From Setoptus koraiensis (lineage: Eukaryota; Animalia; Arthropoda): a DNA stretch of 64,000 bases. Within the stretch, counting starts at the first letter, position 1. Every line of letters begins with the position of its first letter. The notes under the pieces were generated by a model. The model saw only the letters and a list, made by a program, of their open reading frames with translations, was not told where the DNA came from and made no database searches. Of the stretch, positions 29,649 through 40,537 are shown piece after piece. The position numbers and the translations under genes are program-made. Location of the stretch: assembly GCA_048013815.1 (NCBI GenBank), contig CM106586.1:19654001-19718000 (forward strand). Reading direction: 5' to 3'.

Positions 29649-29663
29649 CGCAATTGCAGCAAA

Positions 29664-29980
29664 TCTCGGTGAAAAAGTCCTTCAGAATACCCCTCTTCTA
29701 ATAAGGGTCGGTACCAACGCAAGTCACGGAGCAGTCAAACCTGTTACTAAGACTATTGATGAGTCTACAGATATTTATTACTTTTCGAAAAGTTCACTCG
29801 AGTTACACTTCGAACCATAATCGATTCCAATGAGAAGAAAATGTCATCCTGATCTACTGATACCCAATTGAATAAAAATCAAATAGAATCCTACAATTAT
29901 TTTACAACATAGATCTCGAATAAGCATTGTTGTCATCATTTAGTGTTGTTTCCGCCCTCTGCTCCACGCAGCAAAAACTT
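29664..29980 (+). pseudogene. Duplicated fragment of the prolyl endopeptidase C-terminus, stop and 3' UTR (inverted relative to 31763-32080)
   Basis: Translates LGEKVLQNTPLLIRVGTNASHGAVKPVTKTIDESTDIYYFSKSSLELHFEP* versus PREP LGDKVDQDTPLLIRVDTDAGHGAGKPITKTIDEYTDIYCFLINSLKLRFEP*; the UTR part differs at only a few positions. Confidence 0.92.
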
Positions 29981-31698: not shown

Positions 31699-31923
31699 GG
31701 TTAACGGTAAATCCCGGGATCATTTCACATGGGCAACTATCAATATATCAAGGTAGTTTCTAAAGTTTTTGTTGCGTGGAGCAGAGGGCGGAAACAACAC
31801 TAAATGATGACAACAATGCTTGTTCGAGATCAATGTTGTAAAATAATTGTAGGATTCTATTTGATTTTTATTCAATATGGGTATCAGTAGATCAGGATGA
31901 CATTTTCTTCTCATTGGAATCGA

Positions 31924-34270
31924 TTATGGTTCGAAACGTAACTTGAGTGAATTTATCAAAAAGCAATAAATATCTGTATACTCATCAATAGTTTTAGTAA
32001 TAGGTTTACCTGCTCCGTGACCTGCGTCTGTATCGACCCTTATTAGAAGAGGGGTATCCTGATCGACTTTATCACCTAGATAATACTGCATTTGAGCCGC
32101 AAATTTCAAACTGTGAGCAGGTACTACCCTATCGTCGTGATCAGCAGTCAGCAATAACGTGGCCGGATACTTGTCGGTATCTGGTATGTTATGATACGGC
32201 GAATATTTAATAAGGTTTTCGAAGTGTTCCTTTTCATCCGGTGAACCATAGTCCGATGTCCATGCGTGACCTATGGTAAATGTATGGAATCTTAGCATGT
32301 CCATCACACCAACATGAGCTATAGTGGCGCCAAACAAATCTGGCCTCTGATTAGAAACGGTGGCCACTAGGAGGCCGCCATTTGAACCTCCCTCAATTGC
32401 CAACTTCTCACTGGATGTATATTTATTTTTGACGAGATATTCAGCTGCGTAAATGAAATCGTCGAAACAATTTTGTTTGTTCAGCAATCTACCAGAATCA
32501 TGCCAATCTTGTCCTAGCTCGCCACCACCTCTGATGTTGGCAACGGCAAAAACGCCATTAACATTTTTTAGCCAAATTAAACGGTTGATATTGAAAGTTG
32601 AGGTGACCTGATGGTTGAATCCACCGTATCCATACAGTAGGCAAGGACTTTCACCGTTCAAGTTTATGTTTTTTCTGTGCACAAGGAACATCGGCACTTT
32701 AGTACCGTCCTTGCTATCATAGAATACCTGATTGATGACAAACTCATCGGGATCGAAATTCCTCGGTTTAGATTGGCGCAAAATCTGTGGCTCATTCTCT
32801 AAATTATTCAAGTTAAAATGATAAGTCATTCCAGGGGTTAAGAAAGATGTAAATTGAAAAAAGATTTCGGTGTCTTCGCGCCGTCCGCTAGATTTGGATA
32901 TTGTGCCCATTGAAGTGGAGAATTTTTTGATTAAGTTACCCTCTAGCTCGTGCAACTCTAAATAGTGAACAACCTTTCTAAGATAATTTACCAAAATATA
33001 GTCCTTATAGTTGCACGTGAATACCTCTGCCCAAGTAAGAACATCTTCATCGTGTGATGGTATAACATCGGTCCAGTCTTTTGGGTCCGGTTTGTTCAAG
33101 TCTATCTTGACAATGCGATAATTTTTGGCATCTAGATTTGTTCTAGCGTAGAAGATATTTCCATTGTTGGTAACGTACTCGAACTTTGCACCGAACTTGT
33201 CGTAGATCGGTTTAAGAATTAGTCTTTTGGCATGTTGGAGATCAGGGTCGTGCAAATCGCAAACGAACCACTGATTGTCGTGACAACCCTCGCCGGGAAA
33301 CACATTCAGATATCGACCGTCATCAGAGACGCAAGCATCAACAAGCCATTTGGGATTTTGCGGAAAATCCACAGCTAGCCTGTCGTAGATTTGGTCTGAA
33401 TACAATCTATGATAATACAACGAATGGTTTTCATTTGATTCGACTTCAGAGACTTTGCCCTCATGCTCTGGGTATTTAGCGTAGAAGAATCCAGAATTAT
33501 CATGCAACCAGGATATCGATGTAAATTTACAACGCTCCAGCTTGTCCGGTAGATCCAGGTTTGTCTCAAGATCTTTTATGAAGATCTCAATCCAATCTGA
33601 ACCACTGTAACTCAAGCCATAAGCGAAAAACTTTCCATCGTTAGAGAATGCGGTCAAACTTAATGCAACGGTTCCATCATCACTCAGTGTGTTGGGATCA
33701 AAAAAAATCCTGGGCTCTGAATCTAATGTGTCCTGTTCATAGAGAACGGATTGGTTTTGTAATCCGGAATTTCTATAAAAGTAATATTTACCTCCACGCT
33801 TGAATGGGCAGCCAAATTTTTCGTAGTTCGTATTGTCAGTGAGTTTCTTCTTGATGGCCGCACGATGGGGGCACGAGCTGACGTAAGGCATTGTTATACA
33901 ATTTTGTACGTGAATGAAATCTTTTGTCCTTACTGAGTTGGGATCTTCGAGCCATCTGTATGGATCTGTCACCTAGTTATAGAGTAGGTTATAAAATTGT
34001 ATTAGACTCTGAGTCATTTGTACATATGTTTATCTGATGGTGATGGAGACGAAGAGATTAGCTTACCAGATGACCGTGTAGATCATCAACAAGAAGGTCA
34101 TCACGATAAGCTTCAGGATACTGGAATCTACTAAGACTGGTAGTTGGCATAACTGATGCAGACAGTGTCGGGTCGATCCTGGGGCGTTTGGCTCTTGAGA
34201 AAGTTTGTCTAGTATGACTAAAAATACTAGTAACTATCCTACGGATAGTTGGGCACGAATTTCGAGACAT
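31924..34270 (-). CDS. PREP: Prolyl endopeptidase (S9A), 750 aa, 2 exons
   Basis: Exon 1 34270-34067, intron GTAAGC...TAG (34066-33973), exon 2 33972-31924; YPEAYRD...HGH/VTDPYRWLED start, catalytic GGSNGG, DHDDRV and AGHGAGK motifs. Confidence 0.95.
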
Positions 34271-34618
34271 TTGTTGAGTGATGCATTATGATTGGTATCT
34301 ACTCCTATTTATACTGATAGCTAGGAGCTTGACCGGCTGCGAAATTTTCCATAGCGCATGCTATTTGATAGAGTAGAGCAGTCCGTATGAGTGCGTTTTC
34401 GTACCTACATTTTCCTTACGCACGAGGCGCCTTGAGCCGAACAGCGCGCAACTGCACCTGCTCTGGAGCACGCTAGAGCAAGCAATTAAAAAGTGAAACA
34501 TTTTACGGAACAGTCTGCTTTCAGCTTCACATTTTTTCGCCAACGCCAGCACCTCTGGCGGATTTTTCTTGAACCCAGTGTGAGTGCATTGGAAAAAGGA
34601 CACAGTAATATGAACAAC

Positions 34619-35004
34619 ATGCACACAAATCTAACAGCACATGAGCATTTTAGCCGACAACGTTACGAAAAAGATGGAATAACCGCCTGCCCATGCACGC
34701 CTGTGACTAGTCGATGTAAAAACTCGCATCACCACTCTATTTAACCTAATGGGCTTGTTGTTAAACTTTAACGGACACCGGCCCTCAGAAAGACACGACC
34801 AACTTGGATGAAATCTATTCGAATTCAAGATAGAAATATTTTTCAATTCACACCATCAGCTGCCCACAACAGACAATGCTCACAAGATTGAGGCGAGTGA
34901 AACAATGGCAAACATTCACACGAACATGGTGGCTGTATGACGCGAAATGGCAGGATCCCTTTGACAGTGGCCTACTTATATCCAGGTATCTAAGTGGAAA
35001 GCAG
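34619..35004. repeat. Left arm of inverted duplication (partner 38775-39140): MRPL13 upstream region plus first 43 codons
   Basis: 34737-34985 matches the reverse complement of ~38794-39042 with one mismatch; flanks are homologous but diverged. Confidence 0.95.
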
Positions 35005-36036
35005 AGATGCATCCAGCAACCAGATTTCGACGACAGTCGTCGTGTTGTTGTGGCCAACGTCGTCCCCGTGCAATCATACAAGCACCAGCTACGACACACA
35101 GACCTAGTGCCAGACGACGACAAATCAGTGATGTTAGATCCATTTTCAGATGCCTTCGAGGTAAATCCTGACTTCATTGAGAGCATGGCACCTGGATGGA
35201 AACAGAGCTTCAACTTGGCCTCCTATGTAAATAAGTCCAAAACGTTACAAACCTTCCTCAGCATGGGCGTTAGTCTATTCGACATTGAAAGCATTAGCAG
35301 AAAGAATGCCATATATTTCTTAAGTCTGGATTTCGAAAGAGATTGCGCTGCACACATAAGATTTCTAGTCGACAATGGTTTAAAGACGGACAGATTAGGT
35401 TGGTTTTTTTCCGAGAACCCCGTTATATTCAAAGAGTCCTTGGACGACCTACAAGTTCGATTAAACTATCTGAAGTCGAAAAAATTCACTCGATCTATGA
35501 TAGCCCAGATGATGAATAAGTCGGCTTTAATCTGGTCGCAGAATACAAAAACTATGGATCACAAACTCGGGCTTATTCAGACTGAGTTCCGACTTCCAGG
35601 GGAATATGTTAGAAGAATAGTCACTAAACATCCTACAGCAATTTTAATACCACATGGACAGATGTACATCGTGCGGTTCTCATTCCGAGAGGAGTATGGA
35701 TTCGATGAAGCTCAATTGCATCAATTGTTATTGGCTGAACCGTCTATACTGGAATCGCAAAGATCAGAGATGTTCAACCGTTTCCATTTAATCCATTCTG
35801 AAATGGAGCTGAGCCTCGATATGTTGATCAAGTTCCCCAAACTATTCACATGTCCAATTATGGATGTTAGGTGGCGTTACCGGTATCTTGCCAAACTGAA
35901 AAGAGCTCAATTTGATCCAAAAGTACCCCTGTACGTTCCTCCTAGTGCTTTTTACGACTGCGAAGACGATGTTTTTTGCAAAAAATACGCCAAGACGAAC
36001 ATAGAAGATTATAAGCTCTTTTTGAAGTCGGTCTAG
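34876..36036 (+). CDS. MTERF3: Mitochondrial transcription termination factor 3-like with MRPL13-derived N-terminus, 386 aa, intronless
   Basis: LASYVNKSKTLQ...MGVSL, LDFERD...IRFL.D.G, NP.IF...LDDLQVRLNYL.SKKF and C-terminal AQFDP..PLYVP...DEDDVFC match MTERF3/MTERFD1; the true start codon is uncertain. Confidence 0.88.
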   Translation: MLTRLRRVKQWQTFTRTWWLYDAKWQDPFDSGLLISRYLSGKQRCIQQPDFDDSRRVVVANVVPVQSYKHQLRHTDLVPDDDKSVMLDPFSDAFEVNPDFIESMAPGWKQSFNLASYVNKSKTLQTFLSMGVSLFDIESISRKNAIYFLSLDFERDCAAHIRFLVDNGLKTDRLGWFFSENPVIFKESLDDLQVRLNYLKSKKFTRSMIAQMMNKSALIWSQNTKTMDHKLGLIQTEFRLPGEYVRRIVTKHPTAILIPHGQMYIVRFSFREEYGFDEAQLHQLLLAEPSILESQRSEMFNRFHLIHSEMELSLDMLIKFPKLFTCPIMDVRWRYRYLAKLKRAQFDPKVPLYVPPSAFYDCEDDVFCKKYAKTNIEDYKLFLKSV

Positions 36037-36068
36037 GAGTCATCCGTGGAACCACGTGGCAATTCGTT

Positions 36069-37595
36069 CTACATTTGTCTTGGGATCAATCTCAAGTCGA
36101 TTCTTCTCTCAGGAGTTGTGACCATGCGCAACTTTATCTCAATGTTATCATCTATCACCGGCTCAATCTTGAAATTTGTTACTATTCTAGATATTAGGAG
36201 TCGCATTTGTAACTCCGCCATCCGCCTACCAATGCACGCTCTTACTCCTTTTCCAAAAGGTAAACTCGCGTATCTATTTCTAGTCATTGGACATGATATA
36301 GTTGGATCAGATGAGGAACGGAGCCATCTCTCTGGAAAAAACTCTTGAGCTTTGCTGAAATATTTTTCATCACGACTTGTAGTGAATAGAGAATATATAA
36401 TCGTTTTACCTGCGGGAAGTTTGTAGTTGTACAAATTTATATCACAATCCAGAGTCCTAGCGATAAAAGGAGCGATCGGATACAAGCGTAAGGTTTCCTT
36501 AATACACGCTTCAGTATAAGACTTATGATCCGGTGAGCGGTCCCGTGTGATTGTTTTTGACTCAGAGAAAATGCTCTCTTGATGAGAGGTATTTTTACTT
36601 AAAAGATACAAAACCCATTGTACTGCATTTGCTGTGGTATCAGTTGCAGCCAAGATTAAATCAACGATAGATTGGACGACCTGTTTCTCATTCATATGTA
36701 GAATCATATCTTCTGCAATGCTCGTGGAATCCAGATGTTCTCCGGAGGCTTTGTATGCTTTCGATTGTCCTTTCTTTGTGATATGAGATGTGCATCGGTC
36801 TACATAGAAGCTGGCCAATTCAATTGACCTGGACATATGACGGTCGAACTTCTTCCAAACGCCCAATCCTAATGCCCAAGCAAGCTTTGGTGGAACAATT
36901 TGGAATGTTGAAGTAGTTTCGAACACACCATTTACGCTACGAACTAGTTCTAAAGACTCCTTATTAGCGTCATTGAGGCAATCTAATCTTCGATCAAAAA
37001 GTATTATACCTGTAGACTCTATTGACCATCTATTTAGATCGTTCTTCAGATCTTCAATCAAAATTGATCCATCCTCTCTTTGGTGCCTATTCCATCTGGC
37101 AAATAAATCATCGATAGCGTCATTAAAAAGATGTATACGTGTGCGAATCCTACGTTCAAAGTTTTGTGGTTCAAGGAAGACTTTATTCATAAATCGACGA
37201 GTTTCGCCCCATTCTTGACCACGCATGAAAAATAAGCCGCGCTGTACATTTTTTATTTCATTATATAACTCCCATGCTGGTGGTACATTGTGATGAGGAT
37301 ATTTACCTTCGTAACGGGTTACTTGCTCGAAGATATCTGCATCCGCGACAAAGATAAGTTCAGTTGTGCCCAAGCTTTGTCTGAATATAGGACCCAACAA
37401 TACATGTTGCGTATCAATATGACGATGCAGATAACCAGGTCCACCTTCTTTAATAAGCTCGATCATAGGTATTCCTCTAGGTTTTGGTATATCTTCGCAT
37501 CTTAAGAGATTGCCCGAGTGAAGCTTGACCACCTGTTGGCATCTTCTTGTAATGTCCAATATTCTGCCTGAGGATACTAGCTGCAAGGATGTCAT
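36069..37595 (-). CDS. CYP315A1: Mitochondrial-clan cytochrome P450, ecdysteroid 2-hydroxylase (shadow), 508 aa, intronless
   Basis: Heme motif PFGKGVRACIG, ETLR, PERW, AATDTT; N-terminal GG..YLHRHID..H...GPIFR..LG and EGKYPHH..P.AW.LYN...RGLFFM.G.EW match shadow. Confidence 0.88.
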   Translation of the reverse strand: MTSLQLVSSGRILDITRRCQQVVKLHSGNLLRCEDIPKPRGIPMIELIKEGGPGYLHRHIDTQHVLLGPIFRQSLGTTELIFVADADIFEQVTRYEGKYPHHNVPPAWELYNEIKNVQRGLFFMRGQEWGETRRFMNKVFLEPQNFERRIRTRIHLFNDAIDDLFARWNRHQREDGSILIEDLKNDLNRWSIESTGIILFDRRLDCLNDANKESLELVRSVNGVFETTSTFQIVPPKLAWALGLGVWKKFDRHMSRSIELASFYVDRCTSHITKKGQSKAYKASGEHLDSTSIAEDMILHMNEKQVVQSIVDLILAATDTTANAVQWVLYLLSKNTSHQESIFSESKTITRDRSPDHKSYTEACIKETLRLYPIAPFIARTLDCDINLYNYKLPAGKTIIYSLFTTSRDEKYFSKAQEFFPERWLRSSSDPTISCPMTRNRYASLPFGKGVRACIGRRMAELQMRLLISRIVTNFKIEPVIDDNIEIKLRMVTTPERRIDLRLIPRQM

Positions 37596-37876
37596 ATTAT
37601 CTCACAGGGTAACCTAGGGGAACTCAACTCTCGGATTTTTTTCTAATGGGTCTGTCTTTGTGGATCTTGACGAGCTGAGTGTAACCCGAACAACCGATAA
37701 CATCAACCCATCTTCATAGCCTCCGTAACGCATGTGGGAGGGTGGCGTGTATGCCAAAAAACGCTTCTGTGCATGCGCAACGCCGAGAGAAGACCGGATT
37801 ATTCCAGAAACAAAAAATAATCCGGTTAAGATTTCATTAGGATTGGTATAAAGTATAATAAGAACAACAAACAAAG

Positions 37877-38200
37877 ATGATTTTATTCTGTCCCAATTGT
37901 GGCAATAGACTACTACTATCAGAGGGAGACACATCCTACGTATTCAAATGTCTCACTTGCCCTCATATACAGCGTGTCAAAGACAGGATAACTGCCGCTA
38001 AATACCCTAAACTAAAAGACGTAGACGATGTTCTTGACGATGCCAATACATGGAAGAATGTCGACCAAGCTGACACAAAATGTCCCAAGTGTGAATTCGA
38101 AAAGGCCTACTTCATGCAGTTACAAACTAGATCAGCTGACGAGCCCTCAACCACGTTCTACCGTTGTGTCCAATGTGCATACAATTGGAAGGAAAATTGA
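37877..38200 (+). CDS. POLR3K: RNA polymerase III subunit RPC10/C11, 107 aa
   Basis: FCPNCGN..L zinc ribbon, KLKDVDDVL, CPKC...AYFMQLQTRSADEPSTTFYRC. Confidence 0.93.
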   Translation: MILFCPNCGNRLLLSEGDTSYVFKCLTCPHIQRVKDRITAAKYPKLKDVDDVLDDANTWKNVDQADTKCPKCEFEKAYFMQLQTRSADEPSTTFYRCVQCAYNWKEN

Positions 38201-38345: not shown

Positions 38346-38903
38346 TCAACTATCTTGATCCAAACGAAAGTCCGGGTGGTAATCGAACAACTTTGGAAAT
38401 TTGTCCAGTTCTTCTGCACTGCACTCCTCAATTTTCTTTGGCACAACCCTCAATTGTCTGATTTGGGCTGTAATATTTTGTTTAATGTCTTCAGGTATCT
38501 TTTCATCTCGAAACATCATTAGTCTGGCAAAGAATTCTTTTCTTCGCAAACTGTCCCTGTTGTATCTACAGCTTTTATAAATGGCACGCTCCAAGACAAA
38601 TGTGGGATCTTTCTGATGCAACGACCACGCGGAAGCCCATTTGGCACCTCCGGCATATTGAGTATGATGAAAGAAGAATCTCCACTTCCACTCTTGATTA
38701 GGTAAGGCCACATGAGCGGCATTTATGACTACCACGTGATCTCCACAATCTAGATCGGGGTGCCAGATGGGCTTTTGCTTTCCACTCAGATATCTGGATA
38801 TAAGTAGGCCACTGTCAAAGGGATCCTGCCATTTCGCGTCATACAGCCACCATGTTCGTGTGAATGTTTGCCATTGTTTCACTCGCCTCAATCTTGTGAG
38901 CAT
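38346..38903 (-). CDS. MRPL13: Mitochondrial ribosomal protein L13 (uL13m), 185 aa, intronless
   Basis: QW.TF.R.W..YDAKWQ.P..S...I..YL.GK.KPIWHP..DCGDHVVVIN...F.HT.Y.GG signature. Confidence 0.93.
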   Translation of the reverse strand: MLTRLRRVKQWQTFTRTWWLYDAKWQDPFDSGLLISRYLSGKQKPIWHPDLDCGDHVVVINAAHVALPNQEWKWRFFFHHTQYAGGAKWASAWSLHQKDPTFVLERAIYKSCRYNRDSLRRKEFFARLMMFRDEKIPEDIKQNITAQIRQLRVVPKKIEECSAEELDKFPKLFDYHPDFRLDQDS

Positions 38904-39140
38904 TGTCTGTTGTGGGCAGCTGATGGTGTGAATTGAAAAATATTTCTATCTTGAATTCGAATAGATTTCATCCAAGTTGGTCGTGTCTTTCTGGGGGCCG
39001 GTGTCCGTTAAAGTTTAACAACAAGCCCATTAGGTTAAATAGGATGGTGATGCAGGTTTTTACATTAACTTGAAGTCATTTCGTCTTTATCGTAACGTTG
39101 TCGGCTAGAATGCTCATGTGCTGTTAAGATTCGTGTGCAT
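38775..39140. repeat. Right arm of inverted duplication (partner 34619-35004)
   Basis: Reverse complement aligns to 34619-35004, with an indel-bearing diverged outer flank. Confidence 0.95.
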
Positions 39141-39542
39141 GCATAAATAGCGCACTCGCACAGCGTGTCTGTTCTCAGGTTCTACAATGCATTTTCAAAA
39201 AATAAAAATATATCACGGAGGACAGCGTAGCATTGTCTGTGGAAATTGCGGCCAACCTAAACAACAAACAATCAATCAATTTCAGCCAGATTATTTACTT
39301 ATACAGAATCAAACAAACAAATTACAATTATTATTTTCAATAACAATAACACCCATGTTAATTTATTTATCCACTCATACAAGCTTGTAATATAATCAAA
39401 ATTTTCTTCATAACGATAAGTAGGAAATTCCATATAAAATTATTAAGCACTATTATATCAGAAAAACACATTCACAAATAGACACATAAAACCGCGCTCG
39501 GTCGAACCAAAATACTGATAATAATAACCAATCATTTAGATT

Positions 39543-40043
39543 ATGATGGAAACTGGAGCCCTATTGCTCAAGAAACAGCTAGCAGAATTAAATAAGCATC
39601 CTGTGGAAGGTTTCTCGGCTGGTCTTATAAACGATAATGATATCTATAAATGGGAGGTTATGATCATTGGACCTACAGATACATTATTTGAGGGAGGTTT
39701 TTTTAAAGCTCATTTAGAATTCCCACGTGACTACCCTGTCAAGCCCCCTAAGATGAGATTTATCACCGATATATGGCATCCAAACATTGGCAAGGATGGT
39801 CATGTTTGTATATCTATTCTGCATGAGCCAGGAGATGATCAATTTGGTTACGAAAAAGCCTCAGAGAGATGGCTACCCGTCCATTCAGTAGAAACTATCT
39901 TGATTAGTGTTATATCTATGCTTGCCGACCCAAACGATCAATCACCCGCAAACGTAGACGCAGCTAAAGAATGGCGTGAAAACTATCCGGAATTCAAACG
40001 CAAAGTGGCAATGTGCGTTAAGAAGAGCCAAGAGGACATTTAG
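39543..40043 (+). CDS. UBE2G1: Ubiquitin-conjugating enzyme E2 G1 (Ubc7 family), 166 aa, intronless
   Basis: LLLKKQLAELNKHPVEGFSAGL, WHPNI...G.VCISILH.PGDD..GYE..SERWLPVH acidic-loop signature. Confidence 0.95.
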   Translation: MMETGALLLKKQLAELNKHPVEGFSAGLINDNDIYKWEVMIIGPTDTLFEGGFFKAHLEFPRDYPVKPPKMRFITDIWHPNIGKDGHVCISILHEPGDDQFGYEKASERWLPVHSVETILISVISMLADPNDQSPANVDAAKEWRENYPEFKRKVAMCVKKSQEDI

Positions 40044-40159
40044 AGAATAAATAAAAATTTTCAAATTGTGGATGTATGTGTGTAAGGAAACAAACAAGAA
40101 ACCAAGATTCCGTTGTATATGTGCGATCACAGTGTTCTTTTATTTAATCAATTCTACAA

Positions 40160-40537
40160 TTATTTAAAAGCAAATTTTCTTGAAGCACGCATAGTCGCTA
40201 GTCTCTTTTTGTCCTCTTCGAATTTGTCCCTTAATTCTTGCAATTGTTTCAACTTGCTCTCTCGTATCTCGAATGAATAGAAGTTCAATAGTTTATCTTT
40301 CTTTTCCTTCTTCAGCTTCTTGGCCTTGTCTTTGATGATTGCCCGTTTGGTTGGGTCCTTACCCTTCTTAGATCGCACAGTTATCCATCCGTCCTCGTCC
40401 GGTTCGACAGGAGCCCTCAGTCTATCCTTTAGCTCTTTAGATCTTGCTTCGTATTGTTCCAACGTCTGTTTGATTTCTTTTTTTAATTGTTCGACATTAA
40501 CTATGGAATTATTGTATTCTTGCATAAACAATTCCAT
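40160..40537 (-). CDS. RRP7A: RRP7-like protein, C-terminal domain only, 125 aa
   Basis: PDEDGWITV...LLNFY.FE.RESK...L.ELR.KFEEDKKR...MRA.RKF is the RRP7 C-terminal motif; in-frame stop a few codons upstream of the ATG. Confidence 0.8.
   Translation of the reverse strand: MELFMQEYNNSIVNVEQLKKEIKQTLEQYEARSKELKDRLRAPVEPDEDGWITVRSKKGKDPTKRAIIKDKAKKLKKEKKDKLLNFYSFEIRESKLKQLQELRDKFEEDKKRLATMRASRKFAFK

Follow-up and report, generated by a model that had tools for sequence, protein, structure and literature searches.

A chimeric MTERF3 gene with a 5' end captured from MRPL13 in an eriophyoid mite

In plants, several nuclear genes for mitochondrial proteins have obtained their presequence from another gene: that of rice rps11-1 derives from atp2, that of Arabidopsis sdh3 from hsp70 and that of carrot rps10 from hsp22 (Kadowaki et al. 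1996, as summarised in PMC2631504). Here we analyse a stretch of 64,000 nucleotides (nt) of the mite Setoptus koraiensis (assembly GCA_048013815.1, contig CM106586.1, positions 19,654,001 to 19,718,000, forward strand; hereafter the window, with positions counted from its first letter), in which the open reading frame (ORF) for MTERF3 begins with a copy of the 5' part of the nearby gene MRPL13. As in the plant cases, a mitochondrial protein owes its N-terminal end to a copy of the 5' part of a second nuclear gene whose product is also mitochondrial. The plant recipients had been freshly transferred from mitochondrial DNA and lacked a signal, whereas MTERF3 is an old nuclear animal gene whose own presequence was replaced after relocation. 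The donor piece differs as well, consisting in the mite of the N-terminus of a mature ribosomal protein together with its upstream region, for which a role in import is predicted. The mite junction has also persisted over a synonymous divergence (dS) of about 1, and repeated conversion keeps the module similar.

The chimeric genes of Drosophila, such as jingwei and Sdic, offer a further comparison. Drosophila chimeras can arise from partial duplication or rearrangement (for example PMC6776367 and PMC5460883). Like the mite gene, they are single ORFs in which one gene provides the body and another, which itself stays intact, the 5' end with its regulatory region. They are usually young extra copies with new functions, whereas the mite chimera has a ratio of non-synonymous to synonymous divergence (dN/dS) of 0.08, has persisted over a dS of about 1 and is apparently the only recognisable MTERF3. 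Gene conversion is generally known to drive the concerted evolution of paralogous segments in inverted orientation. The locus resembles such cases in that an older duplication, now diverged, contains a near-identical tract with sharp boundaries, and in that species-specific states are shared in both of the species compared below; it differs in that the tract covers a presumed module of promoter, 5' untranslated region (5'UTR) and start codon shared by two different genes rather than by two copies of one. Inverted duplications of unique sequence at inversion breakpoints have been explained by staggered breaks (Ranz et al. 2007, PMC1885836). Here too, a piece of non-repetitive gene sequence occurs in inverted copies on either side of a short segment, and a second pair lies nearby; the bracketed segment is only about 3.6 kb long, and its inversion relative to an ancestor is putative. 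We conclude that the MTERF3 of the window is a genuine chimeric gene of some age that arose by 5' capture, and that its evolutionary kind is already known.

Two parents in one reading frame

The MTERF3 ORF on the forward strand and the MRPL13 ORF on the reverse strand (Table 1) encode identical residues 1-43, in agreement with the original prediction, and BLASTP between the two proteins gives 54 identities in 73 positions (E 4e-33). Within codons 1-43 the left and right arms differ at three nt, at 34986 (AGG/AGA), 34992 (CTA/CTG) and 35004 (CAG/CAA), all of them synonymous, and the alignment confirms these as the three differences counted earlier. Homology beyond the identical residues had also been noticed, with its end placed at 35070. 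It does continue, without gaps and at about 50% nt identity; the end point needs correction, since the homology reaches about 35085 (codon 70).

The coding similarity is part of an inverted duplication of about 450 bp (34632-35085 / 38694-39126) that includes about 245 bp 5' of the ATG. An inner pair of arm segments (34709-35030 / 38749-39070; 322 nt) shows 94% identity and an outer pair (34632-34683 / 39075-39126) 90%, while the core at 34737-34985 has a single mismatch, at 34785, in 249 nt. Similarity between the arms is far beyond chance. Three layers of divergence can be distinguished: 0.4% in the core, about 16-18% at 34632-34736 and 34986-35004, and about 50% at 35005-35085. From these alignments we read the layers as a recent tract, its older flanks and an unconverted end. 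In the outermost part of the left arm (34632-34736) the copied MRPL13 upstream sequence is older, has diverged in part and contains an insertion of 21 nt. The arms enclose the MTERF3 body, a P450 gene on the reverse strand and RPC11/POLR3K on the forward strand.

Pfam assigns the 386-residue product to mTERF (PF02536, E 2e-16, 60.2 bits against a cut-off of 23.1). Its residues 16-67 match Ribosomal_L13 below threshold (22.6 bits against a cut-off of 23.8) over profile positions 1-52 of 119; a complete L13 domain was not found in this segment. The N-terminal segment of MTERF3 is homologous to L13 by descent, as its BLASTP match to the paralogue (E 4e-33) shows, yet it is not an L13 protein. The closest solved structure is human MTERF3/MTERFD1 (3m66, E 5.5e-43, residues 117-385), with MTERF4 and MTERF2 at about 1e-6, and those of the 49 mTERF homologues that bear a name are the MTERF3 of Fragariocoptes, Aceria, Limulus and Ixodes. 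On such sequence comparisons the mTERF protein, which groups with arthropod proteins of that name, is an MTERF3 orthologue, and the eriophyoid homologues Fragariocoptes and Aceria place the organism among the eriophyoid mites. It appears to be the organism's only recognisable one, the rest of the genome not having been searched for a second copy. In the AlphaFold2 (AF2) model, residues 1-81 have a predicted local distance difference test score (pLDDT) below 50, and residues 110-386 form an all-helical solenoid with pLDDT above 90.

The donor protein is colinear over residues 6-181 with residues 6-178 of the 178-residue, full-length mammalian uL13m chains in mitoribosome structures (E about 2e-42). 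Because MRPL13 aligns with full-length uL13m from residue 6 onwards, what was captured does not qualify as a classical, detachable presequence; by this alignment it belongs to the mature protein, as the N-terminal part of the L13 fold, and targeting information, if any, would lie within it. The mTERF and L13 parents are joined in one uninterrupted ORF and the donor MRPL13 is intact. With an orthologous chimera in a second species, described below, these features uphold the proposal of a chimeric gene with MRPL13 as the donor; the promoter and import signal that the proposal also derives from the duplicate are predictions.

Age of the capture and relocation of MTERF3

The closest homologue of the chimeric protein, P0001 (389 amino acids, 78% identity), is encoded on a 7.5-kb contig, L001, from another sample. 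The gene order on that contig, prolyl-oligopeptidase (PREP, -), MTERF3 (+), P450 (-), RPC11 (+) and MRPL13 (-), is that of the window. The MTERF3 of this relative also has an L13-derived N-terminus, in which 10 of the first 43 residues differ from its own MRPL13 (one change and three synonymous differences in residues 1-19, nine changes in residues 20-43) and L13 similarity extends to about residue 70. Its arms are 76% identical over 245 nt, and upstream homology can be traced to about -200. Between the two species dS is 0.95 for the MTERF3 body and 1.06 for MRPL13. A search with residues 1-100 among 5.8 billion proteins found no other chimera, returning only P0001 and two MRPL13 proteins, and alignment and tree give ordinary short N-termini to all 33 other eriophyoid MTERF3 proteins and to Fragariocoptes.

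Comparison of MTERF3 and MRPL13 from both species helped to clarify the order of events. Site patterns were counted across the four sequences, and in codons 44-70 ten sites group by gene, none by species and one across both. This pattern (10:0:1) indicates that the capture predates the split of the two species. The original prediction had held that the capture is older than the identical core, and had proposed dating the fusion by aligning MTERF3 from related mites; the site pattern and the orthologous chimera bear out the former and place the fusion before the split of the two species, which are now at a dS of about 1. The opposite pattern is seen in the 139 nt 5' of the ATG together with codons 1-36, where 24 sites (18+4+2) group by species and none by gene, which points to gene conversion in both lineages. 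Of the relative's two genes, MRPL13 resembles the window core more than MTERF3 does, both in codons 20-36 (91% against 77%) and upstream (57% against 47%), and the protein sequence of the core equals that of MRPL13, so that conversion ran from MRPL13 to MTERF3. On this comparison we take the 249-bp core to be a recent MRPL13-to-MTERF3 gene conversion tract. Within the upstream region, about 30 of 35 positions match between the relative's arms around 34793-34815, compared with about 40-50% in the flanks, and this block is a candidate promoter or 5'UTR element.

MTERF3 has a different neighbourhood in other eriophyoids. In L002-L005, four loci that represent two other eriophyoid MTERF3s, ABHD16 (-) and MTERF3 (+) stand head-to-head, with an aPKC gene on the other side. 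In L006, from Fragariocoptes, which is the outgroup in the MTERF3 tree, MTERF3 again has ABHD16 as its head-to-head neighbour. Since the outgroup has this adjacency too, it is ancestral. Neither ABHD16 nor aPKC domains were found in the scanned long ORFs of the window, where MTERF3 lies between the PREP and P450 genes and about 4 kb from MRPL13. The comparison of gene neighbourhoods thus indicates that MTERF3 was relocated in the chimeric lineage and had its 5' end replaced. The move lost the 5' flank held in common with ABHD16, so that a new promoter and a new N-terminus were needed, and this would be the reason for the capture. Nothing recognisable as a remnant of the ancestral MTERF3 N-terminus was seen in the ORF list at 39127-39542, next to the right arm; presequences are too poorly conserved for this absence to be informative.

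Probable translation of the captured segment and alternative explanations

We think it likely that the chimera is a functional MTERF3 translated from the captured start codon, and the comparison of the two species provides most of the evidence. Over 1197 aligned nt of non-coding DNA they have accumulated 24 gap events, of which 17 are out of frame, a rate at which about 3.7 frame-breaking indels would be expected over 87 codons. Codons 1-87 have a single, in-frame indel of 9 nt, and both species lack stop codons there, so that the L001 chimera has both persisted and maintained its frame. Constraint on the protein sequence varies along the gene, with dN/dS at 0.08 in MTERF3 codons 88-386, about 0.2 in codons 87-103, where an LDPx motif has a proline that is invariant in a 12-sequence alignment, 0.36 in linker codons 71-87 (one past the end of the linker) and 0.02 in MRPL13. 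M1 is the relative's only in-frame ATG before M107, and translation of the constrained codons 87-103 must therefore begin there at the start codon derived from MRPL13. Between M1 and codon 87 there are four to seven ATGs out of frame. The N-terminus resembles the presequences of orthologues in its charge, with +5 and no acidic residue in residues 1-21 and +6/-1 in residues 1-25 (first acidic residue at 22). These patterns suggest that a short signal at the N-terminus precedes a linker under loose constraint.

Several observations count against this interpretation. Codons 44-70 have a dN/dS of about 0.94 and thus no detectable constraint on protein sequence, so that support for translation in this part comes from the kept frame and not from sequence conservation. 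The only run that is probably RNA, X10, contributes a single contig of 203 nt (38793-38995) that falls inside the shared core and whose end bases match the MRPL13 arm; in run X4 gene-by-gene differences in depth could mean RNA, but intergenic DNA is tiled throughout and the run was not counted as such. The window has in-frame methionines at 86 and 104, the latter matching Met107 of the relative, and a shorter product is possible. In addition, the donor N-terminus is part of mature uL13m and not a known cleavable presequence, and the chimera occurs in two species only. Together these points leave room for the explanation that the L13-derived stretch is merely a 5' leader or untranscribed, that MTERF3 starts at Met86 or Met104 (Met107 in the relative), and that its import relies on internal signals or does not use a presequence. 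Near-neutral codons 44-70 would be expected of a leader, RNA reads do not cover the junction, the confident fold begins only at about residue 110, and Met104/Met107 is common to both chimeric species where other eriophyoids have Leu. It is hard, however, to see why a leader should keep its frame open over 87 codons at a dS of about 1, with one in-frame indel, or why codons 87-103, with their invariant proline, should be constrained when they are reachable only from M1 in the relative. Such a leader would hold five to eight upstream ATGs, and a start at Met86 would give an acidic N-terminus (+1/-5). We therefore regard a leader as rather unlikely. A splice donor, AG/GTATCT at 34984, that would remove the L13 part was also considered and was rejected, as the string occurs in the relative's MRPL13 coding sequence and not in its MTERF3.

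Near-identical inverted repeats of 249 bp can mislead assemblers, and the chimera might on that account be an assembly artefact, or else a very recent, strain-specific duplication without evolutionary persistence. Run X3, from a different study, yields contigs 34400-34766, 34737-34985 and 34956-36026 that tile the left arm with zero differences, the core contig being collapsed (depth 259 against about 110), and runs X4 and X7 contain diverged L13-like codons joined to the MTERF3 body. Because diverged homologous sequence flanks the core on both sides in both arms, a mis-join inside the core could not have created the chimera. The contig from the other species was assembled independently and has the same architecture with diverged arms. 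The chimera is not an assembly artefact, and an origin as an artefact or a transient duplication is extremely improbable; an artefactual left copy, named earlier as a finding that would refute the proposal, is contradicted by the arm-specific junctions in the independent runs X3, X4 and X7 and by the second species.

It may also be asked whether the uL13m fragment does more than direct import. MTERF3 is an assembly factor, and both it and MRPL13 act on the mitochondrial large ribosomal subunit. The fragment could bind the uL13m site on 16S ribosomal RNA, or a uL13m partner, and so tether MTERF3 to nascent large subunits, with conversion or selection keeping it L13-like. Besides the common site of action, the identity of window residues 1-43 with uL13m and the L13 profile that is still just detectable would agree with such a role. 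Against it, 10 of 43 residues have changed in the relative, some of them at core positions of the first strand, codons 44-70 show neutral drift, Pfam covers only profile positions 1-52 of 119 and AF2 gives neither a fold nor docking. The identity spans the 139 nt of non-coding upstream sequence equally, which argues for conversion rather than selection at the protein level, and we consider tethering very unlikely. A broader proposal, which we rate as distinctly unlikely, is that the module of promoter, 5'UTR and N-terminus is kept identical for a reason, either hard-wired co-expression and co-import of a structural protein and an assembly factor that belong to one mitoribosomal subunit or guidance of MTERF3 to nascent subunits by the uL13m peptide, and that the 249-bp arms could also let the 3.6-kb P450/RPC11 segment flip. 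If this were true, a flip would swap only the distal upstream sequences of MRPL13 and MTERF3. No flip joints were found in k=31 contigs, in which recombination inside the 249-bp identical core leaves every k-mer unchanged.

The history of the locus can be set out as follows. In the common ancestor of the window mite and the one sampled relative, MTERF3 left the ABHD16 neighbourhood. Its own promoter and presequence were lost, and their place was taken by a partial copy of MRPL13 in inverted orientation, comprising about 245 bp from upstream of the gene and its first 70 or so codons, joined in frame to the MTERF3 body. The single chimeric ORF thus formed has stayed open in both lineages. The arms have exchanged sequence repeatedly by conversion, and the latest event, in the window lineage, ran from MRPL13 to MTERF3 and left 249 bp nearly identical. 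As proposed further steps, the copied upstream segment would supply promoter and 5'UTR, and translation would start from the ATG of MRPL13 origin. The first 20 or so residues, which are basic and free of acidic ones, would serve as the mitochondrial import signal, and the rest of the L13 fragment would be a loosely constrained, disordered linker.

Surrounding rearrangements and significance

The features of the locus are collected in Table 1.

Table 1. Features of the chimeric MTERF3 locus, by position in the window
Feature	Coordinates	Strand	Basis or remark
Left arm, outer upstream part	34632..34736	+	about -245 to -140 from ATG; 82% identity to right arm over 84 aligned nt
Left arm, near-identical core	34737..34985	+	139 nt 5' of ATG, codons 1-36 and 2 bases of codon 37
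Upstream block conserved in all four copies (both arms, both species)	34793..34815	+	61-83 nt 5' of ATG; invariant columns in four-way alignment
Chimeric MTERF3 ORF, 386 amino acids, intronless	34876..36036	+	ORF list, Pfam, structure match
L13-derived coding segment, codons 1-70	34876..35085	+	codons 1-43 protein-identical to MRPL13; codons 44-70 diverged
Short linker, codons 71-86, of uncertain origin	35086..35133	+	no clear homology to either parent
MTERF3 body, LDPF motif then mTERF solenoid	35134..36036	+	orthologous to other eriophyoid MTERF3 (alignment)
Enclosed P450 gene	36069-37595	-	Pfam
Enclosed RPC11/POLR3K gene	37877-38200	+	Pfam
MRPL13 (uL13m), intact donor, 185 amino acids	38346..38903	-	Pfam L13, E 7.5e-30
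Right arm: MRPL13 upstream region and codons 1-70	38694..39126	-	repeat search, arm alignment

The locus contains inverted duplicates of unique sequence that bracket a segment, and an inverted duplication around 3.6 kb would be the expected footprint of a micro-inversion by staggered breaks. A second inverted duplication (29663-29980 / 31763-32081; 204 nt at 90% and 114 nt at 97% identity) copies the 3' end of PREP and the DNA downstream of it and brackets about 1.8 kb; it lies about 3 kb from the MRPL13/MTERF3 pair and has the same architecture. The inversion itself is putative, since the gene orders of the outgroup differ from that of the window by several rearrangements. An outgroup contig has the order RRP7 (-), MRPL13 (+), RPC11 (-); the window keeps the adjacency of MRPL13 and RPC11, has UBE2G between MRPL13 and RRP7, and carries RRP7 on the other strand. 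A UBE2G-like gene (+) and a gene with the RRP7 C-terminal domain (-) occupy 39543-40537, 5' of MRPL13. As RRP7 is head-to-head with MRPL13 in another eriophyoid, the 5' flank of MRPL13 has been rearranged in the window lineage.

Other observations concern the arms and the neighbouring genes. Run X7 (organism C) has two versions of the sequence 5' of the MRPL13 ATG (38878-38998), one identical to the window and one with 4-5 differences, and its contig of the MTERF3 body (35601-35929) differs at 10 of 329 nt; the arms may be unhomogenised in that population, or two strains may be mixed. The P450 segment (35997-37596) has a depth of 228 in run X3, against 108-129 in its neighbours, and at either end of it contigs from X3 and X4 continue into sequence outside the window. 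An identical second copy of this segment of about 1.6 kb is probably present elsewhere in the genome; the loose-end sequence of the second copy does not occur in the window. In a further eriophyoid sample (L007, 10001-11308) an uninterrupted ORF of 435 amino acids combines Ribosomal_L13 (residues 16-132) with Ribosomal_S2 (from residue 236) and has no Met between the two domains, a possible MRPL13-MRPS2 fusion or a lost stop codon. Eriophyoid mites are described in PMC7738191 as having very compact, intron-poor genomes. The N-terminus of PREP (motif ...YPEAYRDD...HG...) lies in a separate ORF (34058-34270, -; region 33972-34270) upstream of the main one, and PREP has probably retained a single short intron, in a region that is otherwise poor in introns.

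The history of this gene implies that an essential and otherwise conventional mitochondrial gene can outlast a rearrangement that deprives it of promoter and import signal, by acquiring the two together from a nearby gene whose product is also mitochondrial. It offers a clean animal counterpart to the copying of presequences in plants, with a history dated by two species (dS about 1) and visible layers of conversion. It also raises the question of whether a minimal, non-cleaved N-terminus of a ribosomal protein is enough for import. For eriophyoid mites as a group, the locus adds to the evidence that inverted duplications on the kilobase scale reshape their extremely compact genomes.

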